Shown here piece after piece: positions 4,256-47,033 of a stretch of DNA of 64,000 nt (positions are counted from its first letter, which is position 1; each line of letters starts with the position of its first letter). The stretch comes from Piromyces finnis finn. Taxonomy: Eukaryota > Fungi > Neocallimastigomycota. The notes beneath the pieces were generated by a model. It did not search any database. It saw only the letters and a list, made by a program, of their open reading frames with translations, and had not been told where the DNA came from. Location: positions 682,001 through 746,000 of the forward strand of contig MCFH01000019.1 in the NCBI GenBank assembly GCA_002104945.1. Reading direction: 5' to 3'. A program made the position numbers and the translations under genes.

Positions 4256-4290
<35 letters not shown>

Positions 4291-4405
4291 AGAAGAATAT
4301 ATAATAAAATTAAATTAAGTGTAAACTGTTTTTTTATAAACGCTTAATATCTTAGAATTTATTAGTATTATTATTAATATTATTCTTTTTCATATCTTTG
4401 GTCAC

Positions 4406-4422
4406 GCCCGGATTCTCCACCA
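4406..4422 (-). other. Primer binding site, tRNA-Ala type
   Basis: TGGTGGAGAATCCGGGC is complementary to a eukaryotic tRNA-Ala-like 3' end (...UCUCCACCA); it lies 8 nt from the LTR end. Confidence 0.75.
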
Positions 4423-4430
4423 AAATTTTA

Positions 4431-5506: not shown

Positions 5507-5513
5507 GATATTT

Positions 5514-6063
5514 GTCGTTCCAGTTTTTATCCTGGTTGTTAAGGCGTTTCCTTAGCATACATAAGGCTTCTGGTTCGACCCCGCAGATGTCAGTGCCTGT
5601 GGATTTTCCCACTGGGTTTGCCATGGGTTGGGTTATGATATTCAGGTAAGTATAAATGAACTTTCTAATTTACTACTATGATAATAACACTCGTCTAGCC
5701 GGCCTGAGAGGGTCTAGTGTACATGGTACATTCCAAATTAGAACTTAATAAGTGGTGATTTAGGCTATGCCAAAAACACATAATATTCCTTAATCAATTT
5801 AAGTGTAAACATTAGGGGGCGGTTGACACGTGATCAAATTGACTATAAGAGGCTTAGCATTGTAGTTGTGAAATATCGTACAACGACATGCATCTAATGT
5901 ACATGGATTAAGTGAGCGTCGAAGCTGAAGAAACAGTATGACAGACCAGGAGGGTCACAACCACCTAGCAATAGGAATGAGCCAACGTTTCTCTAAGAAC
6001 CACCATTGGGACTAACTTCAATTGATGGGAGAAATGCACTCGGAAGTTAAAAAAAAAAAAAAA
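5514..6063 (+). mobile_element. tRNA(Ala)-derived SINE, subfamily 1, full length
   Basis: Head with CCTTAGCAT (tRNA-Ala AGC anticodon-loop-like) and B-box GGTTCGACCCC, ~450-bp body, A15 tail, then TTAAAAGGATATTT (TSD). Further copies at 22353, 53655 and 7676. Confidence 0.8.
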
Positions 6064-7675
6064 TTAAAAGGATATTTAGAGTGTTTATAATTACTATTAA
6101 AATCATTTATGCCTTTTTGGTGAAGTTTATAGCCCATATCAAAGAATTTTTTGTATTTAATATTTTCCTTAATAATTCGCATAATTTTTTAATTTAGATT
6201 GAGTGATTTAATTTACAATAATTAAAAATAAAAAACATTACAATTTTATTATTAAGTTTAAAGGCCATTATTAAATATGTTGTTATTTGACTATTAAGTA
6301 ACGAGTAAAATAAAAATATATTAAATATCTTTTCATAATTACAACTAGGTTTGTAATTGTTTAATTATTATTAATTAAATATTTGTAAAACTATTATAAA
6401 GCATTATAATATTTACTAATGAATGATAAAAATATAAAAAAACTTAAAATATTAAATATAAAAGAAATACTCATAACCCATGTAAATAATTTTATATTTT
6501 TTATAATTTAAATAAAATAAATTTATGTTTTCTATTTAAGTAAAAATAAATAAATTTTATAATATTTAAAAAAAAATAATTTTATTCTGTATTTTAAAAA
6601 ATTAGTTTCTATATCAATATTAAATATTATTATTATAATATATAAAATAAAATAGATATTATAGAAATTATCTATTAAAATTCTAAAATTATTGAATAAA
6701 GTTTATATATTTAAAGTTTTAAATTTTTCATTGATTTTATATCCTCTAGTTTTTATATTATCATAGCATATTGTAAAAGTCATATGTTATATCAGTTTTA
6801 AAATGATATAAATAATAGTGGAAAAAAGGAAAATTAAAGTTTTAATAAACTTTAACTGTCTATTTTATATTACACCCATATAGAAAAAAAAATTGATGTA
6901 AATAAATAAAATAGCTGAGCTTTTCCAATTATAAACATAATATTTTTATATACATCTTATTATTAATATTATTTTATATATTCAAGTTATTTAGTATAAT
7001 AAATAAGTTATCATTATTATTTTATTTGTGTGAATATATAAAAAAAATATATTATAATGTAATTGGAAGAAAACTATTCTATTTAAAATATATAAAATAT
7101 ATTCTAACTTAAAGTTAATATAATTTAATATGAGATATTTATTTTATTTAACTTTTAAATATTATATATATATATATATTATTTTTAGCTACAAATTTAT
7201 TACATTAAAGAATAAAAAACTTATGGGATATATTTAATAAAGATAAAACAAAGTGTTATAGGTATTATAGTAATAAAATAATGACTGTTAATAATTATTA
7301 ATTAAATATTCAAGTAATTGATATAATCTTAGTCAATTATAAATATATTTTTATTACTATAATGAAAAAAAATACATAGAATATATTTATTAATTTATAA
7401 AATATACCTTTATATACTTTTATGCGTTATGATAATTTATTATATATATAGATAAATCTTTCATTTCCTCACCGATGTTTATAGGATATAATTTTTGTAA
7501 TATAATAAACAATACTTTTTCTTGGTGACGTTTTTAGCCCGTACCAAAAAAGATTGTTGGTTTTTTATTTTTTCCTTAATAGTATAAATTTTTAAGTTGA
7601 ATGGTTTTATATTGTAAATGGAAATTAATAATTAACTATTGAATCTTATTAAAATTGTTATAATACCATAAACTA

Positions 7676-7793
7676 GACAGACTGGGAGGTCACAACCACC
7701 TAGCAATAGGAAGGAGTTAACATTTCTCTAAGAACCACCATTGGGACTAACTCTGATTGATGGTAGAAATGCACTTTGTAGTTAAGAAAAAAA
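7676..7793 (+). mobile_element. Diverged 5'-truncated SINE-1 3' fragment
   Basis: Matches the SINE-1 3' end (CACAACCACCTAGCAATAGGAA...CATTGGGACTAACT...AGAAATGCACT) with an A-rich tail. Confidence 0.8.
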
Positions 7794-8562
7794 TCATAAA
7801 CTAATAAACTTTACCTATTAATAATTTAATAATTCACATGTTTTAAGAATATTTAATATTTATATACGTTTTAGTAATATTATCAGCCATTTTTTATAGT
7901 ATAACTTTAATCCGTTATTATTGTCTATTTTATATTTATCATAAATAAACTTTATTATATGTTATAAATTAATATTAAACTTTATATTAAAATAATTCTA
8001 ACAATTGTATATTATATAAAGCTTAATTTAGATAAATTTTTATTTTAAAATAATATTCTTTAAATATTAATTAATGGATAAAGCTTATTATAATATTTAT
8101 TTCTATAATATATTTTTATATTTTTATTAATAAGTGTAATCATATAAATAATTATATGTTACAGTATATTAAAGATTAAAGTAAATATAGATTTCAATTT
8201 TGTAATATTTTTATAAAATAAAAGAAAACATAAATTTTATAATTATTTTTTTTACAATTTGTGTAAATTATTATTTATTATTATTTAGGTGGATAAATAT
8301 ATGACAAAAGAGTCTTATACTTTATATTATATTTATAGATATTAAATATTTATTATAATTAAGTATGTAAAATTATAAAAACTTAATAATTTATTTAATT
8401 ATTTTCACTTTTTTAAATGGATAAAAAAACAGAAGTTATATATTTTGTTATTTTTATTATTATGAAATAAATTGATATATATTTTTATAATCATAATTAA
8501 AAAATTTTTATAAATTTATTTAACAATACATTTATATATACTAAATAATTATTAATTTTATT

Positions 8563-11217
8563 CTATATATATCCGTTATCAAATTTGCTACTTCTAACCA
8601 TCGCAGAATCTGTTGTAGGTGCTGTTATAATTGTTTGTTTGCCTACATTTCCGTTTATACTTGTTTTCTTGTGATATTCAATAATTTTGGCAGTTATACC
8701 CATTTTACTTTTTGTATTCATGGAATTTCTTGAATCAGATTGTATATTCTTATTTTTATATGAAATTGAACTATCATTTAATTTATTAATGCTACCACTT
8801 AAAAAGTTATCTTCTTTATTTTTTAAAATGAAATATAAAAATAATTTATATCCATAGATTAAACAATAATTTGATAATGAAAACATTATATAAATAATTT
8901 CATTTAATAAAAAGGAAACAATATAATTATTGATGTTTAATGTTTCAGTGATTATTAAAAAAATTGAATCAAGAATATCTAAACAAATTGCTCCACATAA
9001 ATTTATAATTTCATAATGGATTTCTTTAATATTCCATTCAATGAATATAAGTAATAAAAATACTAAAAATATTAAAACTTTATATAAAATAAATAAAATA
9101 TGAACAAATTTTCCAAATGTTTCGTTTAATGAACATATCTCGAAATTAACATCTCCATTATTTATATTAAATACAAAATTAACTTCATATGGTTTTATGA
9201 ATGAGAGTCCATCAAGAATCAATTCAATTAAAATAAAAATGAATAAAAAGATATATCTATTATTTTAATCCATGTTGAATATTTATTTTCTTCTGGGAAA
9301 TAAACAAATAATTTATGTAGAATAGGTATTAAATTTAGTGTAATACCAAATGTAACCATAATCCATTTAAATTGACATTTAAATTTCGATATATCACCAT
9401 ATTCTAGAAAACCAGCACCTAATATTAAGCATAATCCTAATATTGAAATGAACCAAAAATCTTTTGATAAAAAGTTATAGTATTTTTTAAATTTTTTAAT
9501 ATAAAGTAATACAAGTGATAAACCAAATATCATCATTAATCCTGATAAAATTCCAATGAATAATAGAGCAAGAGAAGAATTATCATCTTCATCTAACGAT
9601 ATTTTATATATTTTTGAATAATCATTAATTTCATGAAGTACTTGAGATGCAGTTTTATTTCCATATAAATATTCAAAAACACGTTCTCTAAAAAATGCTG
9701 AATATTCATCATAATCTTTATTAACATGTGTTGGTCTATTAATAAATTGAATATTCTTAACTAATTCACAATCCACAATTTTGCATACTTCTTCATCATC
9801 ATATAGTTCCATTATTCCTGTTGCTATATTAGACGATGCCATTAATTCTTTTTGAGTTTCTTTCGATGTTAAATATTCAATAAAAAGGGCGGCACCTTTT
9901 TTTTTTTCTTCACTTGAAAATAAATTAATACCAATATTTGAACCACCAACACAAGATCCAGATATTCCAGATTTTCCACCAGGTAAATAATGTTGTTTAT
10001 ATTTCATTGAGTATATATTATTCCAATATTTTAAAAATATAGATCTTCCATTCATTAATTTATTAATTGTATAAGGAATAACAGACTGGAATTCTTCATC
10101 TATTTTATATTTTAAATATGTTATTATTTTATAATTATTCATAATTTATTGTTTTAAGAAACCTTACCAGAAGATATTCTTTCTTTTATTTCTTTTATTT
10201 TTTCTAAAGCTTTTATTGCATTTTCACTTAATAAATCTGGAAATGGATCATTTTTTTGATTTCTAAATGAATACATTATTTCGTATATAGAACACATTCC
10301 TGATGATACTTTTAAAGTTATAAAATATATAATTAATATTAAATATTAATAATATCATAATTTATTTATATATAATACTTACTATCAAATAATCCATTAT
10401 ATGCTGATAAATCAGAATTAGGATTTTTTTTTCTATCCTCTTTAAGAATATATTCAGCTGTATCGATTAATTCATTCCATGTTGTTGGAACTTCTTGATT
10501 ATATTCTTTTAGTATTTCTTCATTTACATATAAGACATTAAAGTCTACTTCAACAGGCTATTAATAATATAATATTTTAATATCCATTATATCCATTAAT
10601 TTTAATAATATGTGATGTAAATTAAATTAACTATATATAAATATATATATATTATTATTTTATGTATCAAAAAAGAAAAACGAATATTTACCAATCCAAC
10701 CCATTTATCATTATAGGTACATGTTTCAGAAGCTATTCCTGAAGAATACATATCAATATGTTCTTTTGGTAACACTGTTCTTAAATCTACTAAATATGGT
10801 CCAAATCTTATCGGGTATACATTATCATAAAATATTACATCATATTTTCCTTCTTTCTTTTTAAGCATTGTTTCAATTGTCGTTCCATAATCGTTTATAA
10901 ATTGAGTAGCATTTGCTAATGTTAAAAGATTTAATTTAACTTCAACATCTAAACCTTTTTCTTCAGCTTGACTATTAAACTTTTTTATTAAATCTGTATA
11001 TTCAAAATCATTACTATATGTGAATGCAATAATATTAACAATATTCTTACATTTAGCTTTTCAGTTTTATTATAGATATATATATTTAAACATATAGATA
11101 TTAATATTTAATATGAATTTTATTATATAGAAAAATGTACTATTTCATAAGTATTGTCTATTTACTTATTTTATATAAAAGTGTTGTTAAAAATATCAAT
11201 ATATATATATATTTCAT
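8563..11217 (-). CDS. Receptor A: signal peptide + solute-binding-protein-like ectodomain + class C-like 7TM; multi-exon; 1-nt frameshift at ~9263-9266
   Basis: Exon 1 MKYIYILIFLTTLLYKI (ATG 11217, donor GTAAAT at 11165). SBP-type motifs YDVIFYD...LVDL and LPGGKSGISGSCVGGSNIGIN, then seven hydrophobic segments. A T4 run here is T5 in the intact duplicate at ~26103. Confidence 0.8.
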
Positions 11218-28470: not shown

Positions 28471-31117
28471 TCAATTTGCCTTATTAAAACTATAGCTATC
28501 ATATCTATTACTTTTAGCAAACTCTGAACTTGTTGATGTATATGAAACATCATTTAAACTTGTTTTTTGATGATATTCAATAATTCTTTTAGTAATTTTA
28601 TTAGAAGCTTTAGAGTCTTTAGTATCTAATTGATTCGGATTTTTAATTTGAGTAGAATTCTCATAATTTTTAATATTCATGAGTTTTTCATCTATACTTT
28701 TTTGAGTAAAATGTAAAAATAATCTATATCCATAGATTAAACAATAATTTGATAATGAAAACATTATATAAGTAATTTCATTTAATAAAAAGGAAACAAT
28801 ATAATTATTGATGTTTAATGTTTCAGTGATTATTAAAAAAACTGAATCAAGAATATCTAAACAAATTGCTCCACATAAATTTCTAATTTCATAATGGATT
28901 TCTTTAATATTCCATTCAATGAATATAAGTAATAAAAATACTAAAAATATTAAAACTTTATATAAAATAAATAAAATATGAACGAATTTTCCAAATGTTT
29001 CGTTTAATGAACATTTCTCGAAATTAACATCTCCATTATTTATATTAAATACAAAATTAACTTCATATGGTTTTATGAATGAGAGTCCATCAAGAATCAA
29101 TTCAATTAAAATAAAAATGAATAAAAAGATATATCTATTATTTTTAATCCATGTTGAATATTTATTTTCTTCAGGGAAACAAACAAGTAATTTATGTAGA
29201 ATAGGTATTAAATTTAATGTAATACCAAATGAAAACATGATCCATTTAAATTGACATTTAAATTTTGATATATCACCATATTCTAGAAAACCAGCACCTA
29301 ATATTAAGCATAATCCTAATATTGAAATGAACCAAAAATCTTTTGATAAAAAGTTATAATAATTTTTAAATTTTTTAATATATAGTAATGCAAGTGATAA
29401 ACCAAATATCATCATTAATCCTGATAAAATTCCAATGAATAATAGAGCAAGAGAAGAATTATCATCTTCATTTAACGATATTTTATATATTTTTGAATAA
29501 TCATTAATTTCATGAAGTACTTGAGATGCAGTTTTATTTCCATATAAATATTCAAAAACACGTTCTCTAAAATATGTTGAATATATATCATAATCTTTAT
29601 TTGGTCTATTAATAAATTGAATGCTTTTGGCTAATTCACAATTTATAGTTTCACATACTTCTTCATCATCATATAAATCCATTATCCCTGATAACACATG
29701 ATATGATGTTATTAATTCTTTTTGAATTTCTTTTGATGTGAAAAACTTTATAAAAAGGGCAGCACCTTTTTTTTTTTCTTCACTTGAAAATAAATTAATA
29801 CCAATATTTGAACCACCAACACAAGATCCAGATATTCCAGGTTTTCCACCAGGTAAACGATATTGTTTATATTTTGGTGTTACCATATAGTTCCAATATT
29901 TTAAAAATATAGAATTTCCACTATTTAATTTTCCAATTGTATAACCAACAGCTGAATGAAATTCTTCATCTATTTTTCATTTTAATTATATTATTATTAT
30001 CATATTAATTTGTAATTATTTATTAATTTATTATTTTAATGAATCTTACATGTAGATATTCTTTCTTTCATTTCTTTTATTTTTTCTAAAGCTTTTATTG
30101 CATTTTCACTTAATAAATCTGGAAATGGATCATTTTTTCATTTCTAAAAGAATAAATAAACTCATATGTTGAACTCATTCCCATAGATGCTATTTTAATT
30201 TTATAACAATAAATATTAATAATTATTATTTACATAATAAACATTTTAAATATTTAGAATAGTTCAATTGATGTAAAATCATTATATTATTTATAAATTA
30301 TTACAGTCAAATGCTCCGTTATATGCTTTTAAATCAGAATTAGGATTTTTCTTTTTTTCTTCTTTAAGAATATATTCAGATGTTTTGATTAAATCATCCC
30401 AAGTTTCGGGAACTTCTTGATTATATTCATTTAAAATTTCTTCATTTACATATAAGGCATTAAAGTCTACTTCAACAGGCTATTAATAATATAATATTTT
30501 AATATTCATTACATCCATTAATTTTAGTAATATGTGATGTAAATTAAATTAAATATATATAAATACATATTTTTTATTATTCTATATATCAAAAAAGAAA
30601 AACGAAAATTTACCAATCCAACCCATTTATCATTATAGGTACATGTTTCAGAAGCTATTCCTGAAGAATACATATCAATATGTTCTTTTGGTAACACTGT
30701 TCTTAAATCTACTAAGTATGGTCCATATCTTACTGGATAAACATTATCATAAAAGATAATATCGTATTTTCCATTTTTTTTTTTAAGCATTGTTTCAATT
30801 GTCGTTCCATAATCGTTAATTTGTAGTGTGGCATTTGCCATTGTTAAAAGATTTAATTTAACTTCAACATCTAAACCTTTTTCTTCAGCTTGACTATTAA
30901 ACTTTTTTATTAGGTCTATATATTCAAAATCAGTATTATATGTGAATGCAATAGCATTAATGACATTTTTGCATTCAACTTTTAATATTAAATATATATA
31001 TATATACAAGCTTTAGTATTATTTTTAAAATGAATCATATTATTTTATAATTATTAAATATTTACTAATTTTATATATAAATGTTGTTAAAAATATTAAT
31101 ATAAATATATATTTCAT
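28471..31117 (-). CDS. Receptor C: SBP-7TM receptor paralog
   Basis: Exon 1 MKYIFILIFLTTFIYKI (ATG 31117); ORFs 30524..31009 and 28471..29886; C-terminal half identical to B. Confidence 0.8.
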
Positions 31118-31938: not shown

Positions 31939-33735
31939 AATATAAAGATGATATTTTAAATAATAAATAAAATATTTAAAGGATATATATAATAATATGA
32001 TATATTTTAAAGATATTAAAATATAAATAAATCCTAAATATAAAACCTAACTCCTAACCTAACCCACGCTATTTACTAAAATATTCCTAAACTTAATTTT
32101 TATTATATATGTTTATAATATTTTTTTAATATTTAGAGGGAATTGTATATCTAATGATTTTATATACATATCTTAAATTTAAAATTTTGATTATATCTTT
32201 TTACATGTTAATAGCAGCAGATAAAAATATTAATATTCAATATTTAAAATTGTTAGAATATATGAAACATATGACACATGGATTGAATGTATTGAAATAT
32301 ATTTTAATGTATTGTATTTGATTAGATGTTTATCATAAATTATATTAATAAAGTTGCCATCGTTATAAAACCTAAATTAACAACTCTCAATAAAAACAAT
32401 TCATTATAATATTTATAGTTAGAGAATTAGATTTAAAATAAAATTTCAAAAATAAAGATGATTACTTTAGTTTAACATTTATTATTACCCTTTATTTAAA
32501 TGAATGTCACATTTCTATAGCATTATTATTTATTACTTATTACTATATTATTTATAAAATAATTAAATAATTTTGGTTTTGTAATAATTAATTATAATTA
32601 GACAATTAATTATTGAAGGTAAAAACTCTATAGAATCATTTTTATAGATGAAAGTTAATGATTATATTTTTTTTATATATATTAAGTTAACTATAAACAA
32701 TTTTTAAATTACTTAGAATAGAATGTATAGATTAGACATATATATTTTATTATCTTATTATATATTTCATAAATTTTAATTAAATAATTAAACACTATCA
32801 TAAAGCATATATATATTTTTATTTAGTTTTTTTATATAGTAAGATAATTTTCATATTTTTTTTTTTTTTTTTTTTTCATTTTCAAAGTTAAAATTAATAA
32901 ATTTTATAATTTATTATGAAATTCTAATTTTAAATTAAATACATTAACTAAAACTTTAATTCTTTTATTATTAGAAAAAATATCAAAACTTAAGTCTGTA
33001 TTAGATAAACATTGCATTACACGTTAAGTTTAATATTTTATAATATATTTTATAAAATATAAAATTAGTAAAACAATTAATTCTTAATTATTTTTATTAT
33101 CCTTACAAAGTATTAATATTAGAAAAATAATGAATCGGCGGGAGATAATTTGTTATATAGCTATTTAAAAAAACATTTCTATTTATATTATTTTAAAATG
33201 AGTTTTTAATTTTTTAAAATAGTTTAATATATATTTAGAAAATCAAAGTTACATCTATATTATCAAAAATAATTAAGATAAAATTTCCTTTTATGTAGAT
33301 AATTAAAATTATCTATTTTTGTTTAGTTTTTATTTTTTTTAAATTAAAATTCATTTTCAAAAATTAATATTTAAAGTTTAATATTGATAATTTTCTATTT
33401 TTAAATTAAATAAAACTTTAATTATCATATTGAAAATTTATTTATTTATAATTAATACTATATTTAATAATACTTTATTTCTAAAAATAATAAAAACATT
33501 AAATAATATATTTTCTTAATTCACTTTATTTTTAAAAAAAAGTATAAAAAAGAAAAAAAAGCTTTTTTTTTTTTACATTATGCTTTCATTTCTAATATTT
33601 TAATATTGAATATTTTAATAAAAGAAATGAAAGCATGGAAAAAAAGTAATAAATTTTATGTATTTGAAAAAAATTTATTTATAATCTATTAAAAAATTAT
33701 AATAAAAATTTAAAAAAAAATGGTAAAACTTGCTA

Positions 33736-33816
33736 TTTCTTGAAAATGTTTATATACCACAAAATTTCAAAATCATAATGAGAAATTTCTATACCAAAAA
33801 CTGACGTGAAATGCAA
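33736..33816 (+). promoter_or_regulatory. Conserved bipartite upstream element of hairpin cluster 1
   Basis: TATACC at 33753 and 33790 (37 bp apart); homologous to the elements before clusters 2-4. Confidence 0.55.
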
Positions 33817-33922
33817 AAAAAAATTATTTTTTAACGAATTTTTAAATTTTATTTTTTAGTAATTAGTAAAATAAAATTTTATCAAATGTATTTTATTCAT
33901 TACTTATTAAAAAAGAAGGAAT

Positions 33923-34146
33923 TTGGTACAAACTCAAGGCGGACTCATAAAATATACTTGGGTTGACTAGCGCTTGAACCAAGTCTTGCTTATAATTGAA
34001 ATATAAAGATTTTGGGTACAAACTTAAGGCGGATATATTATATTAATGTATCGTCGTAGCGCTTAAACCTGAATCGAAAAAAGAAAATGAGGTTTATCAA
34101 GAGCGGATCATTTAAATGCATGGTTGGCTAGCGCTTGAGCCTTATT
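33923..34146 (+). ncRNA. Hairpin-motif cluster 1 (3 units), candidate structured ncRNA
   Basis: Units 33923-33982, 34008-34075 and 34086-34146 share the core YAAG(A)GCGGA-stem/loop-G(A/U/G)C(G)UAGCGCUURA with compensatory changes. Confidence 0.6.
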
Positions 34147-34319
34147 TTTAAATAATAAAATCTATTAAAGGTGTAAAGGACGAAATAAATTCAATAAAAA
34201 TTATTTTAAATTTAGAATGGAATTTTTATGGATTATTTTGAATTTGAAAACTTTTAATAGAAGTTTTTTTATAAAGAATATATTGACTATTTTTTTTATA
34301 ATTAAACAACAAGTTCTAT

Positions 34320-34830
34320 TTCTTATCCAAAAATTAGTTCTATAAACTTAAATTAAACTTATCCAAAAATTAGTTCTATAAACTTATCCTAAAAAACAAA
34401 ACAACTTAAATTAAACTTAAATTAAATTGAACAAAAATTAGTTCTATAAACTTATCCTAAAAAACAAAACAACTTAAATTAAACTTAAATTAAATTGAAC
34501 AAAAATTAGTTCTATAAACTTATCCTAAAAAACAAAACAACTTAAACTTAAATTAAACAAAAATTAGTTCTATAAACTTATCCTAAAAACAAAACAACTT
34601 AAACTTAAATTAAACAAAAATTAGTTCTATAAACTTATCCTAAAAACAAAACAACTTAAATTAAACTTAAACAAAAATTAGTTCTATAAACTTATCCTAA
34701 AAACAAAGCAGCTTAAATTAAACTTAAAATAAACAAATTAAACTTAAATAATAATCAAATCAAGAAATTTAAATAAAAATTAGTTCTATAAACTTATCCT
34801 AAAAACTTAAATTAAACTATAAATTAATCC
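34320..34830 (+). repeat. Minisatellite, ~54-68-bp units
   Basis: Repeated AAAAATTAGTTCTATAAACTTATCCTAAAAA(A)CAAAACAACTTAAA..., about 8-9 copies. Confidence 0.85.
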
Positions 34831-36008
34831 TAAAATAACAAAATCGAAAATTATAAATAAAGTAGATCTTTAAGTAATTTTCAAAAAAATTTTCAGAAGT
34901 TTTTCAAATTAATTTTAAATTAAAATTTAGTTCTATTTTCTTATCCTGAAAAAAATTAATTGAAAACTTTAAAATTAAACTTAACAAATTTTCAAAATTA
35001 TTATTAGTATGTTTTTTTTAGGTTGATCTTAAAAAATAATACTTTCAAAAAAAAGTTTTTTTTAAAGTAGAGCTTTAAAAAAACTAACATAACTTCAAAA
35101 AACTTAAACTAAAATAAACTTAAATTAAACTATAAACTAAAATAAACTTAAACTATAAAAATTTTTAATTTTAATTTTAGTGTATTAATTTTTTTGTATT
35201 ACAATGAACATATTTATTAATCAGTAATTTGTAAGTTTTAAAACTTGTCTATTATTACCTTTAATTGGTATTTTATAAGGTATAATTTCATTTTCGCTTT
35301 TACTCCATCTAAAAGGTTATTACCCTTAATTAGTATTTTATAAGCTATTATTTCATTTTCAATTTTACTCCATCTTAAAGGTTAAAGTTTAATATTTTTG
35401 AATTAAGTATGGGTAAAATATAAGAATTACATTTTTTTCAACAATAAATTTTATAATAATATATATATTGAAGGGTTTGCTTTAAAATATTATTTATATT
35501 GGTAATAAGCAATAATTTTAATATATAATGTTCTTAATAATTACTATTAAACTTTTAATTAATAATCTAAATATAATTTAAATATTTAATTCAGTAATTT
35601 TAATTATATAATAAAAATTTATTCAAAAACATTATTTATAAAATTCTTTAGTTATAATTATGCTTTGTTATATAAAATAAATAAAAATATTTATTAACAT
35701 TTCTATATAAAAGACATTAAATTCATAATTAATTTATATTTTTAGGTTATATTGATTATAATTTGTATAATTAAATAAAAATTTTAATCTAAATAACATT
35801 AAAAAAGTATAAAAAGGAAAGAAATTCTGTGCACATTTTTTTCTTTGTACTTTTCATTTCTTAAATTTATATATTTTAAAATAAAATAAAAGATATAGAT
35901 TTATTGAGATGGAAGTACAAAACTAAAACAAAAAAAAAAAAACAATAAAACAAATAATAATAATAACAATAATAATTCTATATAATATATGCTATGTAAC
36001 TTTGTATC

Positions 36009-36225
36009 TTCTTGATGATGTTTTTATACCTAAGATTTTCATTAATTTGAGAATTTTTAAATATACCCAAAACTACCTTGAAATACAATAACAATATACA
36101 ATATATTATTATAATTATATTAATATAATTATTTTTTTAGTTATTTCTTTTTAGTAACTATAAATTAAAATAAAAAATAAAAACAAGATTTCTCAAATGT
36201 GTTTATTCATTGCTTACTCCCCAAA
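36009..36225 (+). promoter_or_regulatory. Conserved upstream boxes of cluster 2 (copy at 38250-38466 for cluster 3)
   Basis: TTCTTGATGATGTTTTTATACC (TATACC 36025), TATACCCAAAACTACCTTGAAATACAA (36062), and a third box GTGTTTATTCATTGCTTACTCCCCA. Confidence 0.55.
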
Positions 36226-36269
36226 TTCAAATTTAAAAAACTAAAGAAAATTAGAAATGAAGAAAGAAA

Positions 36270-36749
36270 TTTGGTACAAACTCAAGGCGGATTCTTATTT
36301 ATTTTCTAAATATTATTCTCTAAATACTAGAATTGACTAGCGCTTGAACCAAACTTTACTTTTGTAACAAAGAATGAAATTTTGGGTACCAACTTAAGGC
36401 GGATTCTATTTTGATAATAGAATTGTCGTAGCGCTTAAACCTAAAATTTTAATTTAAAAATGAAAAGATTAATCAAGAGCGGATCATTTTATATAAATAA
36501 TATATATAAATAATATATATAAATAATATATATAAATAATATATAAATAATGAAATGATTGACTAGCGCTTGAATCTTTTTTTTTTTAAATTTAAATATG
36601 TTAATAATAAAAAATTTTAGAATATACTCTAAAATTTATAATTAATTAAAGGAGCAAATCCAAGAGCGGATTCAAATTATTATCTATTTTATTTGAATTA
36701 AAATAAAATATATATAAATATTTTGAATTGTCGTAGCGCTTGATCCTTT
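36270..36749 (+). ncRNA. Hairpin-motif cluster 2 (4 units)
   Basis: Units 36270-36353, 36378-36448, 36463-36580 and 36648-36749. Confidence 0.6.
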
Positions 36750-37026
36750 AATAATAAATATAATATTAAATAAATATTATAAAAATTTTTAAAATATATT
36801 TAATAAAATAATGATAATAAAATAATAAAAAAAAATTCTTATCAAGAATTATGTTTAAAATTCAAATATAATATTTGTTATTTATTTAAGAAAAATAAAT
36901 ATATTAAATAATATTGTGATGTCTTAATTATTACAAATTATATTATTGATAAATAAAAATTAATTATTTTTATATTTTTTGATTGTGTAAAAAATGATTA
37001 GGTTTGTTAGTCTTTAAATGGGAAGC

Positions 37027-37480
37027 TTTTTAAAATAACATTTTATAAATAAACAATTATAATTATACAAATAATATAAATAAAAATAATTATAAAATAA
37101 TATTTATTTAAAAAGCGAGGTAGTATTTATCCCCCCATTTTTGGTCATTTTAGCCAGAATTTCTAACCAGAAGAAATTCGACCTCTGCCAGACTTTTAGC
37201 CAGGATTTTTTCTGTTTTTCTCATTTTTTTACCAAAACCAGACAAATTTCAGTTCAAAAAGAATTTGAGAAAGTGAAACTTTCTACAATTCGTCAAGGGA
37301 TGGATATCCCGTTGAATATATTCGCCGCTCGAAATACATGTACATCACTTGATATATCAAGTGATGTCCAACCATGTCTATATTTTTAAAATAACATTTT
37401 ATAAATAAACAATTATAATTATACAAATAATATAAATAAAAATAATTATAAAATAATATTTATCTAAAAAGCTAAGTAGT
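37027..37480. repeat. ~260-bp GC-richer segment bracketed by ~95-bp direct repeats, with a 26-bp perfect palindrome
   Basis: Repeats ~37027-37124 and ~37383-37480; ACATCACTTGATATATCAAGTGATGT at 37342-37367. Confidence 0.6.
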
Positions 37481-37674
37481 TTTTATATAATATTTTTTGT
37501 TATAATTATATATAATAAAAAAAATGAGTAGCATCATTTTATACAGATAAATGAATATAAAAATAAGGTTATATTTATTTAATTATGATTATATTAATTT
37601 CAAAATTCAAATTTTATATATAAAGAGAGAATTACTATAATATTTATGAAACTGTTGTGTTTTTTTTTTTTTAG

Positions 37675-37870
37675 TAAAATAACATTATTATTTAAATACA
37701 GTTAATGATAATAAATAAAATAAAAAATAACATTATTATTTAAAATACAATTAATGATAATAAATAAAATAAAAAATAACATTATTATTTAAAATACAAT
37801 TAATGATAATAAATAAAATAAAAAATAACATTATTATTTAAAATACAATTAATGATAATAAATAAAATAA
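37675..37870 (+). repeat. ~45-bp tandem repeat, ~4 copies
   Basis: AAATAACATTATTATTTAAAATACAATTAATGATAATAAATAAAAT repeated. Confidence 0.8.
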
Positions 37871-38510
37871 TAAATTTTATATCATTTTTAATCAATTTAT
37901 GGTTTATATTTAGATATTAATATATAATTTTTGTTAAAGCGACTATAATTTATTAATTAATGCTAAAAAAAGGCTCATATTAATTAAATTCCAATAAATT
38001 TTTTATTTATATAAACTATTAATTAATTAATTAATTAATTAAAAATAAATATAAAAAGGAAAGAAATTCTGTGCAAATTTTTTTCTTTGTACTTTTCATT
38101 TCTTAAATTTATATATTTTAAAATAAAATAAAAGATATAGATTTATTGAGATGGAAGTACAAAACTAAAACAAAGAAAAAAAACAATAATACAAATAATA
38201 ATAATAACAATAATAATTCTATATACTATATGCTCTGTAACTTTGTATCTTCTTGATGATGTTTTTATACCTAAGATTTTCATTAATTTGAGAATTTTTA
38301 AATATACCCAAAACTACCTTGAAATACAATAACAATATACAATATATTATTATAATTATATTAATATAATTATTTTTTTAGTTATTTCTTTTTAGTAACT
38401 ATAAATTAAAATAAAAAATAAAAACAAGATTTCTCAAATGTGTTTATTCATTGCTTACTCCCCAAATTCAAATTTAAAAAACTAAAGAAAATTAGAAATG
38501 AGGAAAGAAA

Positions 38511-38990
38511 TTTGGTACAAACTCAAGGCGGATTCTTATTTATTTTCTAAATATTATTCTCTAAATACTAGAATTGACTAGCGCTTGAACCAAACTTTAC
38601 TTTTGTAACAAAGAATGAAATTTTGGGTACCAACTTAAGGCGGATTCTATTTTGATAATAGAATTGTCGTAGCGCTTAAACCTAAAATTTTAATTTAAAA
38701 ATGAAAAGATTAATCAAGAGCGGATCATTTTATATAAATAATATATATAAATAATATATATAAATAATATATATAAATAATATATAAATAATGAAATGAT
38801 TGACTAGCGCTTGGATCTTTTTTTTTTTAAATTTAAATATGTTAATAATAAAAAATTTTAGAATATACTCTAAAATTTATAATTAATTAAAGGAGCAAAT
38901 CCAAGAGCGGATTCAAATTATTATCTATTTTATTTGAATTAAAATAAAATATATATAAATATTTTGAATTGTCGTAGCGCTTGATCCTTT
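38511..38990 (+). ncRNA. Hairpin-motif cluster 3 (4 units; recent duplicate of cluster 2)
   Basis: Units at +2241 from cluster 2; unit 3 differs by CUUGA->CUUGG, which keeps pairing as U-G. Confidence 0.6.
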
Positions 38991-39990
38991 AATAGTAAAT
39001 ATAATATTAAATAAATATTATAAAAAATAATTTAATAAAAGAATAAAATAAAAAGAAATTTAAAACAAAAAAAAGAAAGATATGAAAATGAGAATATTTA
39101 TTATGTGTTATTAAATTCTGTTTTTAAGCAAAAATATTTACAATAAAAAATTAGCTTTGACATATATAATAATAGTAAATCATTTAAAACCTTCATTATT
39201 ATTTAAAGATAAATTTAATAATAAAAGTTTAAAACAATTAAAACATGAATAAAAAAAGTTATAATAATTGCTATAAGAGTATTTTTATTATGATATAATA
39301 TATTTTATAGATAATAATATAAGGAAAAGAAATATTATATATTAAAAGTTGCAATACAATATATATTTTCATAATAAATGTACTTTAGTATAATAATCGT
39401 GACTTTCAATAAGACTCAGTTTAAAAAGATAAAATTTTTTCAGGAAACAAAAATTATGCTTTCCATTGCTGCCAGTATTTGAGTATTCTTTTGAACAATG
39501 AAAAGAATAAAATATATATTTTATATATACAAATATATGATTACTTTATTTAAATTCCAAGTATAATCTTGTTAATGAAATAATAATTCATAATTTTACA
39601 TATTTCAATTATTATTTTAATTATAAGAAAAGAAAGAACCGATATTTTATAACTTTCAAATACTACTTTTTTGATAATATTTAATACTATAATTGTTGTA
39701 ACACTTTTTAATAAAAATAAAATTTGAAAAAAAAGTAAAATAATTAAAATATACATTATAATAATAAAGTATTAGAAGTTAATGAAATAATTATTCATTA
39801 TTAATTTTACATATCCCAATTATTATTTTAATTATAAAAAAAGAAAAGAACTAATATTTTGAAACTTTCAAATACTACTTTTTTGATAATATTTAAAAAC
39901 TATAATTGTTGAAACACTCTCCAATAAAAATAAAATCTGAAAATAAAAGTATATTTTTTTTTAAGTTTTTTATTTCTTTTTTTTTTTTTC

Positions 39991-40602
39991 ATTATGGTTC
40001 AAGCGCTACGACAATTTATTATAAATTCGAATAAATCCGCTCTTGAGTTTGTACCATAATTTTTTAAAAAAAAGTTTAAGCTAAAAGCGCTTGACAATTA
40101 ATTTATAAATTAATCCGCTCTTTTAAAACTTTCAACTTTTTTACTAATTTTAATATATAATTAATACATTTTTTTAATTATATGACATTATATTATATCA
40201 AAATATACTAAAGGTTCAAGCGCTACGACAATTCATTTCTTAATAACTATTTTTTTAAAAATCAAAAAATAACTATTTTCTTTAAATGAATCCGCCTTGA
40301 GTTGGTACCTTTATATATAGTATAATTTTATTTCATAGAATAAAATCATACATCTTATAAAAAAATAAGGCTCAAGCGCTAGTCAATCATGCCTTTAAAT
40401 GATCCGCTCTTGATACACCTAAGTTTTCTTATTTTCTTTAAAAAATTAGGATTAAGCGCTACGACAATTCATTTTCAAAATGAATCCGCCTTAATTTTGT
40501 ACCCAATTTTTGTTGATAAAAAGAATAAATCTGGTTCAAGCGCTAGTCAATCCCTTTATTTTTAATTTATTTTAACCGGAATCCGCCTTGAGTTTGTACC
40601 AA
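39991..40602 (-). ncRNA. Hairpin-motif cluster 4 (6 units, inverted orientation)
   Basis: Units 40602-40533, 40511-40441, 40423-40366, 40312-40210, 40131-40071 and 40060-39991. Confidence 0.6.
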
Positions 40603-40642
40603 ATTTCTTTTATTTTAATTAATTTTTTATATTTGCTTCTTT

Positions 40643-40824
40643 GTGGGGAGAAAGCAATAACAAACACGTTAAGAGAAATTTATTAATTTAGCTCAATATT
40701 TTTTCATTTAAAAGATTATAACATATATTAAAAAATGTGTTGTTTGTATTTCAAGGTAGTTTAGGGTATATTTAAAAAATTTCAATAATAAGAAATTTTT
40801 GGGTATATAAACATCATCAAGAAA
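40643..40824 (-). promoter_or_regulatory. Conserved upstream boxes of cluster 4
   Basis: Plus-strand GGTATA at 40765 and 40802 (37 bp apart). Reverse complement reads TTCTTGATGATGTTTATATACC, TATACCCTAAACTACCTTGAAATACAA and GTGTTTGTTATTGCTTTCTCCCCA. Confidence 0.55.
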
Positions 40825-42208
40825 ATACAATACTTTTTTTTTTTTGATGTTATTATTTCATATTAATTTTATTTAATAAAAATAATAGCACAAAGAAAAA
40901 AAATATAATAGAGAAAATAACTATTTATATACTTTTTATAAATTTAAATCGATCAAAGTAATAAATATTATTATTATTAATTATAGTTACTTTTAATTTA
41001 AATAATTGTATAGATTATTATTGATATTAATTATAATAATTTCTTTGCCATTAATAAAATTTAGCAAACTCTATTTTAATAAAAATATAAATCTTTCAAA
41101 TATAATTTGAGAATAATTCTATTTATAATCATTTTTAATATAAAAATTTACTATAATTGTTTTATTGCTTATTCTAATAAAAGTATCAAAATATTCAATT
41201 AATATATAAAAAAAAAATAATAAAGCTGTGAAAAAAAAAAGCTGTTTTTTTTTTTTTGTTGTTTCATTTAATTTTATGTGTTGTTCCCAAATTTAAATAA
41301 TATTAATATAACTATTAAATATGAATTTATTAACATACTATAAATATCTAATTTATTAAAATATATTTTGATAGAATATAAAAAAAAAGAATATATTCAT
41401 TAGCATATTGATGATGTATAACATAATTATTTATATTTTTAATATAGAATTAAAATTAAAATTTACTATTTTTATACAATAAGCAATCATAAGGTTGAAG
41501 CTTTAATAGAATTTTTTAAATAATATTTATTACTTCAAACATTGCTGTGTAATTGTTGTGTAACTAATTTTTTTTAACATTTATTAGCTATCATAATCAA
41601 AACTAAACAAGATTAAAAATATATTATTAATGAATGAATTTTAAGCTCACTCGTTTTTTTTTTTACTATTATATATTTAATTTAATTAATATATATTCTC
41701 AATGTTATTATTATTTATAAAAATATTACATAATAAAAATATATTTTTAAGAATTAAGAAATATGAAATATGATTTTAATGATATAAATATTTATAAACA
41801 CATTACATTAACAAATTATTATATAATTTTTCAGTTTATATAGATAAATTACAATTTTAATAATTTTTTAGTTATTTATATATTTATTAACATTTTCAAA
41901 TTAATGGTTATATTTGTTTTAAGGAATAAAAGTAAAAAAAAAATTAATATTAAAAACACATCCACCATTAATATATTAAATAAAAGAAATAATATTATAA
42001 ATGCCAATTTTATATATTTATTCTTACTTTTATTTTTTATATATATTTTTATTAGCTATATATATATAATATTTATTTTTAATAATTTTTTAAATAAAAA
42101 AAAAATTAAATACAATTATTTTATAAAAAATTAATACAATTATTAATAAAAATAATTTAAAAAAAAAAATAAAATTAAAATTAAATTGTTCTTTTACTTA
42201 TTTAATAT

Positions 42209-45200
42209 TTATACCATATATTCAGAAAGAATAACATCAATTTGATCACAATTAATGTATTGAATATCTTCTTTAGGGAAAAAGGGTTGATTAAGAGCAA
42301 AATAAGTGTCTCCTGCTTTTAATTCTTCTTCATTTTGAAGTTCCATTCCACCTCGTGCTTGAATATGAAGTCGAATCAATTCATAAATACTTAAGTGATG
42401 AGGTATAGTATAATATTGAAGAAGTGCTTTTTTGTATTTACTATTCATTTCAGAATATTTTAGATAGTTAGCTTTAGTTATCTCATTTTGACTAATTATA
42501 TTCTCATAATTATATTGATTTGGATAAGGAGTTTGAAGATTTTGATACTTCCAATAATATTCTATAAAATCATTCATATATTTAATAGGTAAGGAGTGAT
42601 CCATCCATATAAATTCTCGGGTTTTACAATCTAACACAAGAGGACAATAATCATTTGTGATAGTGGAAAGTTTGATTTTTTGACGAATATTAGCAACTAT
42701 AAAAGGTTCACTAGAATTTAAGAATTCTATTTCCATCCATCCGAATTCGCCATAATTGTGACCTCCTAAAAGATTAATAATAATATAACGCCCATGTTTT
42801 TCCAATATTTTTTCGATATCAATATCGACATAATTTTTCTCATTATGTCGATTATAATTTTGATATATACCCCATAAATTATTGATTTGTTGATCCTTTT
42901 CAGTGAAAATGCCTTCAAATTTAAACTGATCATTAAATAATTCTAATATCATACTATTATTATATCCTGTAACAAACAATCTCACTTTTTTATAACTTTG
43001 ACCAATAACACAATTTTTCTTTTCTTCTAATTCTTTTTTGAGATTTAATATATTTCTTATAGTTTCAAAAATTTTTTCTTTAATTATATTCAGTCTGTTT
43101 ATTAAAACGTTTTCTTTATTGAAATTTATTTCATTTCTTATTTTAATTTCTAATCTTTTTTCAGCAATATGTAATTTTTTTTCTTCATCTTGACTTATTT
43201 TCAATTTAATTGCAGCATTCTCTATTAATTTTTCTTTTTCTTTTTCTGTAATGTTTTTATAAGAGAGTTTGTATCGTGAACCTTTGGTTAAAACCTCAGT
43301 ATTTTTGGTGGCATTTCTTAAATCAAATGGTAACATTATTTTAGTGAGTTCAGGACTAATGTAAACACCATTTAGTTTTGTTTTACCTTCAAATTTATGA
43401 ATTAATGCTTTATCACATATATTAATAATTTGTTGGTAAAGTTCTTCTTTTAATGGCTCTTTCACCTTGGATGTAACATAAATAGTACTTTGGATATTTT
43501 TTATGTAAAATGCTCTGAATTTTTCTTCTTCGTTGGAAATAGGATTTTAAACTTAAAAGTACTTTTACGGAGGAATTTTCAACAATCGATTCAAAAAGTT
43601 GAATAATCATATCAGTCTGATTATTTTTGGTTAATAATTCATCTAATCTTCTCAAGAATATACCAGGACGTTGAGATAACAATTGAGCAGCTTCCATAGT
43701 ACGATTTCCTTTAAGATATTCAACAACTTTAGAATTAAAAGGTTGACGTTCATGTCGATAGTTTCGACAACTTTTATTAATACTCATATTAATTGAAGAA
43801 ACGGTATTTATTCTTTCTCTAAGAAGTTCTCGATTTAATTTAGGAATAAGGTTTTTAATATTCTCAATTAATAATTTTTGTAAATGTTGATGGCGTGTTT
43901 TATATCCATTCTTTAATAAATAATGGTTATTTTCATGTTTAAAGAAATTTTTATTATTGATAAATTCATTAACCAATAAATCTAATACATTTGTATAAAC
44001 AATAGTAGAAATATTAAGTAAATAATTATTAAGGTAATCTTTTATTTCTTTTGGCATAAATTTGATTTTATTTAACAATTCAAAAATATTTTCATATTCA
44101 TTAATTTCAATAGGATCTTTACATCCAAATAATTGAGAATACATTTTTTTTAATATTTTATTCCCAGTTCTTCCTTTTCCAATTCTAAAAATGTTATTAT
44201 TATTATAATTGTTGTTGTTGTTGTTGTTGTTATTATTGTTGTTACTCCTACTATTATTATTATTATTAAGAATTTGTTGTTGTAAAATATTTTCCATTTC
44301 TATATTCTGTTGATTAATGACTTTTATTATTTTTTCTATATATTGTGTAAATTGTTCATCTTTTTCTAAAAGAAGTTTATATAATCGCTTTTCGTATTTA
44401 ATATCTTTGTTCTGTGGTTCTTTAACAATACAATAACATCCTAATAAATCATTCACTAAATCTGGGTATTTTGATTTATATTTGTTAGGATGAACTTTTT
44501 CACAAAATCTTACCCAAACTGTTTTATTACTCATAATATCTTCATATCGATTGGTACAATGATTTAATAGTTCCATTAATATACGTCTTTGGAGATTACT
44601 AAAGGATTTAAATTTTGGACGTTTCGTTATGTTAGCTGGATTATCATTAGAAAATACTACGGCTAATCGAAGAACATCATTTACATTATGATATTTAGAT
44701 GCAATTTCTTCAATTGGAATATCATCTATGAAAGTTTCAATGATTATATTCATGATTTTAGCAAAATTTTCTTTGTTGATAATTTCTTCAGGAATATACT
44801 TTAAAAAGTTATTTTCATAAGTTATAAACAATTGTACATCATTAATATCACTGCTTGAGATTGCTTCTGGCGAATTGGTTAAATTAGATATTATTTGATT
44901 GAATTCGGATTCTTGTCCTAACGAAATAACTTTTAATTTAACATCTTTAATTTCATATTTTATGGTAAATAAATTATCATCCTTTTCAAAATTACTTTTA
45001 TAGCTCATTGGTATATTTTTAATGGAATAATTTAATGATTCTAAAACATAAAGCCATTTACAATAATAATAGTAAAGTTCTTCAAAACTTTGATATAATT
45101 CTTTATTCTTTAATTTTTCTTTTAAATCTTTTAAATCTTCACTGTAGAGATTTTCTCCTATAATAGATATTATATTATGACAAAATCCATCAAATTCAAT

Positions 45201-47033
45201 ATTATTATAAAGTGCAATAGTTTTTAAAAGAGGAATATCAATAACATAGCCATATTTGAATATGACTTCATTAAAAAAGAGTGCTGAACTTAATTTGTTT
45301 AAAAATATATTAGTTTCTTTTTCAATTAAAGAATGAATTGCTTTTTTTAAATTTGTATTTTTAATAACTTGATTTTTTTTGATTTGTTTTCCATTCTCAA
45401 ATTCAATATCTTTATCCTCTATCGTTAAAACACAATATAAAAGTTTGCATTCTTTGACTGTTACTGGATTGGATAATCTGGATATGACTGGATCTTTTTG
45501 AATTGCTTTTTCAATAATTTCTTTATATACTAAATTTAAATCTTCTTTTGTATCTGTGATAAACTTACAACGTTTGTTCATAAGTATTTTATTAAAAATA
45601 TGTCTTTTGGAAAATTCTTTAAACTCAGAAATTAATTCACGATATTCTTCAGTCTGATATGCCTTACTTGTGAGAAATGATTGAACACAATATGAATTGG
45701 AAAAACTATACCACAAAGTTTTGTTTTTAGAATATTCTTCAATTCTATTTGTACAACGATTTAATAATTTCATTAAAAACTCGACATGATAATTTAAAAG
45801 ATTAAATATTAAAAATTTATTCAAAGGATCATCATAATAGTCGGAAAAACCGCAGGCCATAATTAATACGTTTTCTACATTAATTTCGATATTTGAATTT
45901 TCTAATAAATTCATAATTAAATTTTCTTCTTCATTTCCATATCTTTGAAGTATTTGAGAAATAATAAACACTAAATTTTTATAATTTGGTATAATTTGAG
46001 GGATAAAATCTTTAAATTGATCTTTCTCATTATAATTATAATTTTTTTTCATTAGAGCTAAACTTATAGCCATTCTTTCATCTTTAGAAAATAATGTATT
46101 TGTTTGAATAGCAATTTTTAATCTATTTTTTATTTTTTCAACAGCATTACTATTATACCTTTTCTTATAAATACAACTACAAACAAAGCATAAATTTTCA
46201 ATAATTAATGGTAAAGATTCTGGAACAAAATTTTCATATTCACCAAAGTAGTTGATAATTGTTTCTATATCTCTTTTCTCATCATATAAGAATTTGTTTG
46301 GAGATTCCAAAATATATGTCATTATTTGACCTATTTCCAAAGTAGTTCCTTCAGTAAGTACATTTTTGTAAATAACCATTCTAAATTGTTTTTTATTTTT
46401 TGATTTATAATCTATGGGAAGTTTACTAATATCATAGTCTGATGAATGTTGCAAACAATATAACCATTCATTATACATTTTGTAAATGTTTGGTATATCT
46501 AACCTCACTAGTGGAAAATTTGGAAATTTAACGCAATACATATTTCCTTCAATATTTTTTACTAATTCATTATTAAAAGATTCAATTTGATTTTCATTAA
46601 AAAATGCAATTCTATTAATGATATTAATGTCAAGACAATAATTAAAACATGAGATATTATCATTCAGAACAAGAGGTAATTTTAATTTTTCAAGTATTCT
46701 TGTAGCTTCATTTTTTATCAATTCATTTAAATTATTCATAAAGGTTTCATTTTTAGTAATATCTTCTTTTAAATTTTTATTTTTCTTGATACTTATTATT
46801 TCTTTATATTTAAATACAAAAACTATTTCATCATTTACTTTAATGGTAGAATTTAAAAAGTTGCAATCTTCAACTGTAATATTATATGAGCTATTTGCAA
46901 AATATTTATTTTCTTTAATTGCATTTCTAATATTTTCTATATAAAAGTTATTTATACTATATTCTGTATTATCATAAATATTAAATAAAATTTTTCTACA
47001 TCTTCTTATAAGAACCGGACTTAAATTATCCAT
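42209..47033 (-). CDS. ~1,600-aa intronless bacterial-type protein with a C-terminal TerD-like domain; one frameshift at ~43520-43535
   Basis: Motifs recalled from a bacterial TerD-associated family: KLKVISLG, DVLRLAV, FKSFS..QRR.LMELL, WVRFCEKVHP, FNSKV, QRPGIFLRRLDELL, VYISPEL..IMLPF..R, and VDIDIEK...GRYIII...CPLVLD...REFIWMD. Shifting frame at CAACGAAGAAGAAAAATTC gives ...EEKFRAFYIK...KEPLKEE and joins the two ORFs. Confidence 0.7.

Follow-up and report, generated by a model that had tools for sequence, protein, structure and literature searches.

A previously uncatalogued family of polycistronic hairpin RNA genes, apparently restricted to anaerobic gut fungi

In a 64-kb stretch of the Piromyces finnis finn genome (GenBank assembly GCA_002104945.1, contig MCFH01000019.1, positions 682,001 to 746,000, forward strand; hereafter the window, whose coordinates we use throughout), 17 large hairpins lie in four clusters between 33.9 and 40.6 kb. 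These clusters are members of a previously uncatalogued RNA gene family without match to known families. Their units share one covarying structure with two conserved bulges, they are transcribed, and their unit types follow an order conserved across species, behind a conserved leader and a conserved upstream element; the ordered types, the leader and the upstream element go beyond the original prediction, which had been made from the sequence of the window. Anaerobic gut fungi are major degraders of plant fibre in herbivores, and hardly anything has been learned of their non-coding RNA. We tentatively read the hairpin RNA as an abundant long non-coding RNA whose hairpins dock a protein.

A covarying hairpin with two invariant bulges

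The original prediction counted 17 multi-bulged hairpins in four clusters. A regular-expression scan and the covariance model R1 each return the same 17 units, all of them on the predicted strand, and zero further ones in the window (Table 1). The TAGCGCTT octamer occurs 16 times in the 64 kb against 0.33 copies expected by chance, always within 33968-40545, while the seventeenth unit (40071-40141, minus strand) carries AAGCGCTT instead. The clusters form islands of 24-34% GC in surrounding DNA of 6-19% GC. Among the open reading frames (ORFs) of the window, none of note overlaps the hairpins and none explains them, in agreement with what had been stated at the outset.

Each unit is 70-150 nt long and consists of a basal helix, a 5' bulge (ACAAAC in most unit types), a YAAG/CUUR helix, a bulged G or AG, the pairs CG/CG, a 3' bulge GNC(G)UAG, an inner helix and a variable loop. 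This is the architecture originally described, and it holds both in the alignment and in the folds. Every hairpin contains a GC-rich 7-bp helix with the invariant core AAG(A)GCGG/AGCGCUU. Structure was tested on an alignment of 45 units (A1) drawn from the window and nine metagenome or metatranscriptome contigs, with 500 shuffles for comparison; all pairing counts below refer to these 45 units. Standard pairs fill 92.4% of cells versus 78.1% after shuffling, with no shuffle reaching the observed value, and changes on both sides of a pair affect 137 cells versus 54. When the 3' partner was slid by any offset, at most 53% of cells were paired. Covariation thus supports the hairpins that had been predicted from the window alone. 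At the UCAAG/CUUGA position of P2 the pair is C-G in 32 units, U-A in 11 and A-U in two; the inner helix comes in 35 distinct sequences, and both-side changes are found at eight of the nine basal pairs. No pseudoknot or junction appeared in the covariation data.

The strand of the RNA follows from the wobble pairs. As predicted, a G-U pair closes the inner helix in 16 of the 17 window units and a G-C pair in the other (34007-34078). Over the alignment G-U pairs outnumber A-C pairs by 95 to 13, and the GGCGGAU strand pairs at 92% versus 83% for its complement. The excess of G-U identifies the GGCGGAU strand as the RNA, the strand originally favoured.

When single units are folded by minimum free energy (MFE), the model is reproduced, with z-scores of -1.4 to -5.5. 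When 12-nt flanks are included, the basal helix grows to 11-19 bp in a type-specific manner, and few unpaired bases are left between neighbouring units. Stems reach 25-45 bp, and above the bulge the short units pair over only 13-17 bp. The upper stem and loop vary freely; invariant positions include the bulged G and the CG/CG pairs, the G that closes the inner helix with U, and the G, C, A and G of the 3' bulge. The two bulges lie on opposite strands, 7 bp apart, flanking the invariant GC helix and adjoining the conserved G-U pair. A G26-C138 pair is conceivable, which would turn the 3' bulge into two small ones; since all bases concerned are invariant, covariation is silent on whether the bulge is split or single.

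Several local interpretations were rejected. The T-runs that follow C-type units belong to basal helices of 13-19 bp, whose 3' strands they form; they are not RNA polymerase III terminators. The K-turn, the sarcin-ricin (loop E) motif and the bulge-helix-bulge, checked by hand against consensus rules, each break down in half of the units or in all of them. The second sheared A is missing from GUC-type units and the bulged G from GAC-type units, and the bulges measure 6-7 nt with 7 bp between them. 'Kissing' between GAC and GUC bulges was dismissed as well, because the units stop alternating after the fifth and two of them have G as the middle base.

Whole clusters are transcribed

The RNA evidence consists of assembled, strandless contigs (Logan) from runs of RNA type, the type being partly guessed; the library types of runs X2-X5 are not on record. 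Four such runs from the same organism contain 33-78% of the sampled words of cluster 2, and a 2025 gut metatranscriptome contains 49% of those of cluster 4. In run X5, contigs laid on 35990-36483 reach depths of 3,400-8,900 across 36206-36459, with similar depth over the leader, the hairpin arms and the spacer between units A and B. A 370-nt contig in runs X2 and X3 (depth 80-89) extends from about 35925 through the upstream element and leader into unit A. Another paralogous cluster, located elsewhere, is expressed too, as a loose end in X5 shows.

Two related contigs, L004 and L001, are derived from cDNA, since the mRNAs attached to them lack genomic introns: the profilin 5' untranslated region of L004 is without an intron that is present in GCA_002104975.1, and the Agd3-like ORF of L001 is without the introns, about 277 nt, of its genomic counterpart. 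Upstream element, leader and the full set of units sit together on each of these RNA-derived contigs. The polycistronic hairpin RNAs originally proposed are thereby borne out, with clusters transcribed and whole clusters on single RNA-derived contigs. An A-run begins 26-55 nt after the last unit of both contigs and may represent a poly(A) tail. At L001:935-960 and L004:1240-1262 this A-run joins the hairpin RNA to an unrelated spliced mRNA in chimeric cDNA assemblies. The apparent neighbourhood with profilin (L004) and an Agd3-like deacetylase (L001) is therefore an artefact, and synteny with these genes was rejected. One profilin protein is encoded in GCA_002104975.1, GCA_016946835.1 and GCA_050613775.1, at least the first of which we take to be a Neocallimastix assembly.

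Unit types are ordered and conserved among relatives

An exact-pattern scan of JGI metagenome records matched 17 contigs. Nine are very AT-rich (17-33% GC) and hold two to eight units each; the other eight are single chance matches, one of them inside the arginyl-tRNA synthetase gene of a bacterium. In 185,579 bacterial and archaeal genomes the pattern turned up only seven times, as scattered single matches attributable to chance, and in viral contigs not at all. Part of the hairpin RNA sequence is present in gut and bovine metatranscriptomes. The AT content, the gut sources and the fungal genes on two contigs fit with anaerobic gut fungi, and the family is apparently restricted to these very AT-rich organisms. 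The genes are multi-copy, with different adjoining genes in different contigs.

When the arms of the 45 units are clustered, units group by their position in the cluster and not by contig or species. We distinguish types A, B, C and D/E, the terminal type F and a type 'G', and the longest clusters read leader-A-B-C-D-C2-E-G-F. The multi-unit design therefore appears to be old, with each module under its own constraint. In type G, AAAAG/CUUUU replaces UCAAG/CUUGA, a double compensation seen both in the window and in contig L005; unit G of cluster 4 is a conserved type and not simply degenerate.

Clusters 2 and 3 lie in a very recent segmental duplication with a period of 2,241-2,242 bp and 99-100% identity. 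The duplicated gene copy comprises an upstream hairpin, an A-tract, the ~90-nt upstream element, the leader and four units. Being tandem duplicates, the two clusters are not independent and were counted once, and independent support comes from the nine other contigs. The 1-kb repeat pair had also been considered as a long terminal repeat (LTR) or as a miniature inverted-repeat transposable element (MITE), and it is a plain tandem duplication. Clusters 3 and 4 stand tail to tail. In cluster 1, a decayed fourth unit can be made out at about 34170-34290, where UUAAAGGUGUAAAGGACGAAAU can be aligned to the first part of a D-type unit (UUAAAGGUGCAAACUCAAGAGCGGAUU in contig L012) and the GC core is lost; L012, a relative of cluster 1, retains the fourth unit. 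On another contig (L014:1-1051) two hairpin RNA genes stand head to head; about 150 bp separate their upstream elements (405-504, minus strand; 659-752, plus strand).

A conserved leader and a box C/D-like element precede the hairpins

Ahead of unit A lies a conserved leader. Its CTCCCC motif precedes the GGCGGA of unit A by 60-70 nt in all clusters, and it includes AAATGTG (36194-36200). Further upstream, 93-269 nt from the leader and 138-372 nt ahead of the unit A GGCGGA, is an element of about 90 nt with a terminal stem GUAUUU/AAAUAC, UGAnGA near its 5' end, UGA near its 3' end, and two TATACCC boxes with an internal hairpin AAAAUUUC/GAAAUUUU. The boxes are 37 bp apart in all window copies and 32-46 bp apart elsewhere, the variation falling in the loop of the internal hairpin. 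The terminal stem varies to GCAUUU/AAAUGC and GAAUUU/AAAUUC, two to three compensatory changes that make for thin covariation. The C-box-like UGAnGA is conserved; the D-box-like xUGA is conserved as well, but not as CUGA.

The upstream element is probably transcribed. As it lies inside RNA contigs, we regard it as part of the same transcript, namely a box C/D-like RNA module; a promoter role is an admissible alternative. Its C-rich boxes and the AAATGTG of the leader resemble the Dictyostelium upstream sequence element (DUSE) and the TGTG box of Dictyostelium non-coding RNA (ncRNA) genes. Pairing of the upstream boxes with unit bases was rejected, since the duplex energies, -7 to -13 kcal/mol, do not improve on what shuffled guides give.

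A further conserved hairpin, followed by an A-tract, is found 100-150 nt 5' of the ~90-nt element (33580-33636, 35847-35919, 38089-38161 and L011:1-60). Its arms covary (AUGCUUUCAUUUC/GAAAUGAAAGCAU, GUGCUUUCAUU/AAUGAAAGCAC and GUACUUUUCAUUUC/GAGAUGGAAGUAC), and it may act as a terminator or boundary or belong to the transcript.

Table 1. Hairpin clusters, units and associated elements in the window
Feature	Position	Strand	Remarks
Cluster 1	33917-34150	+	3 units
Cluster 1 unit A	33917..33989	+	R1 67.7 bits; clusters with type A units
Cluster 1 unit B	34007..34078	+	R1 63.8 bits; sole window unit with G-C closing the inner helix
Cluster 1 unit C	34080..34150	+	R1 57.8 bits; MFE fold z = -4.6; short 5' bulge, GGCUAG 3' bulge
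Cluster 2	36265-36755	+	4 units
Cluster 2 unit A	36265..36359	+	R1 74.7 bits; RNA contig depth 3,600-8,400
Cluster 2 unit B	36377..36450	+	R1 77.2 bits; RNA contig depth 4,600-13,500
Cluster 2 unit C	36456..36585	+	R1 24.9 bits; 57-nt AT-repeat loop; arms align in alignment A1
Cluster 2 unit D	36643..36755	+	R1 57.6 bits
Cluster 3	38506-38996	+	4 units
Cluster 3 units A-D	38506-38600, 38618-38691, 38697-38826, 38884-38996	+	R1 matches; recent duplicate of cluster 2
Cluster 4	39987-40608	-	6 units
Cluster 4 unit A	40524..40608	-	R1 77.3 bits
Cluster 4 unit B	40440..40511	-	R1 76.2 bits
Cluster 4 unit C	40360..40430	-	R1 57.5 bits
Cluster 4 unit D	40204..40317	-	R1 65.1 bits; long extended upper stem (fold)
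Cluster 4 unit G	40071..40141	-	R1 46.6 bits; same type at L005:1259-1330
Cluster 4 terminal unit F	39987..40063	-	R1 71.4 bits; clusters with L004:1102-1190
Whole gene copy	35790..36790; tandem duplicate 38032-39031	+	Repeat comparison
Conserved leader block AAGATTTCTCAAATGTGTTTATTCATTGCTTACTCCCCAA	36185..36226	+	Alignment A3; abundant X5 RNA contig starts inside, at 36206
Leader copies	38426-38467 (+), 40645-40676 (-), 33877-33909 (+, weaker)		Alignment A3
~90-nt upstream element	35998..36095	+	Lies within RNA-derived contigs
Upstream element copies	33726-33823 (+), 38239-38336 (+), 40737-40834 (-)

The hairpin RNA matches no known family

The searches agree with the original statement that no known family accounts for the hairpins. 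Rfam 15 gave no match in the window at the gathering threshold. At E<=10, over the window, a 261-nt compact cluster and the nine related contigs, Rfam returned only generic hairpin noise well below thresholds; its microRNA models scored 14-30 bits versus thresholds of 67-100, and neither a known ribozyme class model nor the Y_RNA model matched at that level. ARAGORN found no tRNA gene on either strand. A resemblance of GCGGAUU...AAUUCGC to a tRNA acceptor stem was set aside, the fit to a tRNA 3' end being off by 3 nt. In the literature we found no description of this RNA or of ncRNAs in these fungi, and two surveys of fungal structured RNAs omit them.

Known classes were also compared by structure. 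The units are not small nucleolar RNAs (snoRNAs) of the box C/D kind: they have no C or D box, and the basal helix is followed by ACAAAC and then by the covarying Watson-Crick UCAAG/CUUGA. Nor are they box H/ACA snoRNAs, as their bulges are one-sided and identical in all types and 3' of the basal helix there is no conserved ACA or H box. The polycistronic snoRNA clusters found in fungi and plants are similar in that several structured units, each with a terminal stem, share a transcript, and in that the first element here has a C-box-like UGAnGA and a D-box-like UGA beside a covarying terminal stem. Unlike in snoRNA clusters, the 17 units are without such boxes and without variable guide segments, and their unpaired bases are the same in all types.

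Dictyostelid Class I RNAs are single hairpins of 42-65 nt with their own promoter (DUSE) about 60 nt upstream and a single-stranded 11-nt motif (PMC7919456). Like them, the genes described here are lineage-restricted, abundant, multi-copy and often clustered ncRNA genes of a very AT-rich genome, in which a covarying stem joins the RNA ends, a short motif is invariant and the rest varies, a conserved C-rich element lies upstream, and AAATGTG stands between that element and the RNA. Assignment to Class I was rejected, because the units are 70-150 nt long, polycistronic and without the single-stranded 11-nt motif, and the distance of the upstream element is variable. Three to eight long bulged hairpins share one RNA of 0.5-1.4 kb, and the sequences are unrelated.

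With polycistronic microRNA clusters such as mir-17~92, miR-430 and plant MIR395, the hairpin RNA shares tandem paralogous hairpins on one transcript, with conserved arms and variable loops; the large conserved asymmetric bulges, the one shared GC core and the fixed order of unit types set it apart. Vertebrate Y RNAs are hairpins that join the 5' and 3' ends of the RNA and carry UUGACUAG on the 3' strand of the Ro60-binding stem. Half of our units contain UUGACUAG and the other half UUGUCGUAG. Unlike a Y RNA, they have no 5' partner GGUCCGA with a bulged C, and they are polycistronic. The roX RNAs, with their roX-box stem-loops, NORAD, CsrB/RsmZ, and SPA and sno-lncRNAs are protein-binding ncRNAs built from repeated modules. 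The hairpin RNA is likewise an abundant ncRNA that repeats one recognition module, except that its modules are hairpins of 70-150 nt in distinct ordered types and not short motifs. SPA-lncRNAs combine a 5' snoRNA with a polyadenylated body, whereas the abundant X5 form appears to start after the C/D-like element, not at it.

Possible roles: a scaffold, a precursor or a source of small RNAs

We lean towards a lineage-restricted, abundant long non-coding RNA whose hairpins dock a protein, as a multivalent scaffold or sponge, a reading that we hold at slightly less than even confidence. Each gene would give rise to one transcript, probably made by RNA polymerase II and polyadenylated, which would run 5' to 3' from the ~90-nt box C/D-like element through the conserved leader into a nearly gap-free chain of three to eight long hairpins. 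The two bulges around the GC helix would form the docking site of one sequence- and shape-specific protein or ribonucleoprotein (RNP): bulges on opposite strands, 7 bp apart, round an invariant GC helix beside a G-U pair look like a composite protein recognition site. Since this site is repeated three to eight times on an abundant and apparently stable long RNA, it suggests a multivalent scaffold or sponge, and the long RNA may, by analogy, work like roX, NORAD or CsrB-type RNAs and not as a short-lived precursor. Among the candidates originally named (small-RNA precursors, a new self-cleaving ribozyme, or a protein-binding or scaffold RNA), the even depth over spacer and hairpins and the invariant unpaired bases favour the last, and the invariant bulges and ordered modules point to a specific molecular partner.

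Several considerations weigh on the other side. The long, near-continuous stems are of a kind that RNase III or Dicer could use as well. Some contig starts, that at 36206 among them, may reflect assembly breaks and not RNA ends, and small processed RNAs may have been lost by size selection in libraries of unrecorded type. The even depth shows that a long form exists, not that the long form is the functional one, and the poly(A) tail is deduced only from chimeric joins in A-rich sequence. A bolder version, possible although we doubt it, is that the hairpin RNA represents a new class of abundant RNP RNA of anaerobic gut fungi, in which up to eight ordered, non-interchangeable hairpins and a C/D-like lead module assemble a defined multi-protein particle or feed a non-canonical small-RNA pathway.

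The strongest rival, in our view unlikely, is that the transcript is a polycistronic precursor, cut or trimmed at the basal helices into three to eight stable hairpin RNAs of ~70-150 nt, each in a small RNP of its own. The ends of each unit are indeed closed by a long covarying basal helix, a usual means of protecting small RNAs, the unit types are distinct and conserved, and the first element of the transcript resembles a box C/D RNA. Set against this are the equal depth of spacer and hairpins in X5, the full-length clusters assembled in several RNA data sets, and the lack of C/D or H/ACA boxes in the units.

Still less probable is that the hairpins are Dicer substrates, a microRNA-like or hairpin-derived small interfering RNA cluster whose conserved arms of ~22 nt would be the products. 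Anaerobic gut fungi possess Dicer and Argonaute and lack an RNA-dependent RNA polymerase (PMC5796279), so that hairpins would be a natural trigger. Conserved arms with variable loops, the tandem arrangement and stems of up to 25-45 bp would suit such a role, and the G26-C138 pair, on which covariation is silent, would reduce the 3' bulge to small bulges. The conserved 6-nt asymmetric bulge argues against a canonical small-RNA duplex, however, and a canonical microRNA-type duplex was rejected because this 5' bulge and the 3' bulge of 6-7 nt, with their invariant unpaired bases, lie inside the conserved arms. Moreover, a single GC core common to all unit types is not a seed, the short units offer few base pairs above the bulge, the precursor is very abundant, and no complementary target turned up in the 64-kb window.

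Two further ideas have very little in their favour. For each unit being a new self-cleaving ribozyme that cuts the chain into monomers speak the conserved unpaired bases beside the G-U pair and GC-rich core, in head-to-tail units; nothing else in the data supports cleavage, no known ribozyme model matches, uncut multi-unit RNA is abundant, and the covariation data hold neither pseudoknot nor junction, which makes this highly improbable. Just as implausible is an element acting as DNA, whether as a foldback or MITE transposon, as the leader array of a retroelement or as a palindrome bound by protein (AAGCGCTT). Transposons and repeats do abound in the region and the family is multi-copy with varying neighbours, but the 95:13 excess of G-U is strand-specific, RNA abundance is high, the R1 scan finds ordered clusters behind a leader and zero solo units in the 64 kb, the unit flanks are mutually complementary and not direct repeats, and no TG...CA ends or primer-binding site were seen at the boundaries of the 35790/38032 repeat pair.

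If hairpins do dock a protein, its identification might reveal an RNP or a regulatory pathway specific to the lineage. As a transcript marker for gut fungi in metatranscriptomes of rumen and gut, the hairpin RNA is also strong and specific, and its promoter and leader may serve as expression tools in a group that lacks them.

Other features of the region

The intervals between the clusters contain repeats of their own. After cluster 1, a CTTAAATTAAA-type tandem repeat with a period of 57-68 bp occupies 34334-35170. A repeat of the same kind lies 3' of the orthologous cluster on L012 (L012:830-1104), so the repeat travels with the gene copy. Between clusters 2 and 3, at 37131-37382, a GC-rich (31-35%) insert of 250 bp is bounded by direct repeats of 104 bp (37027-37130 and 37383-37486) that are 96% identical. 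It contains repeated TTTTAGCCAG motifs, a terminal palindrome CATCACTTGATATATCAAGTGATG and an ORF of 82 aa, has no Rfam match, and may be a small mobile element. It is followed at 37691-37875 by about four copies of a 49-bp tandem repeat with 97-98% identity.

Beyond the clusters, no Pfam match was obtained for the large ORFs at 42212-47033 (minus strand). A 471-aa ORF at 28474-29886 (minus strand) shows weak matches to Pfam 7tm_3 (the seven-transmembrane domain of class C G-protein-coupled receptors) and SBP_bac_8 (bacterial-type solute-binding), both below the curated cut-offs.

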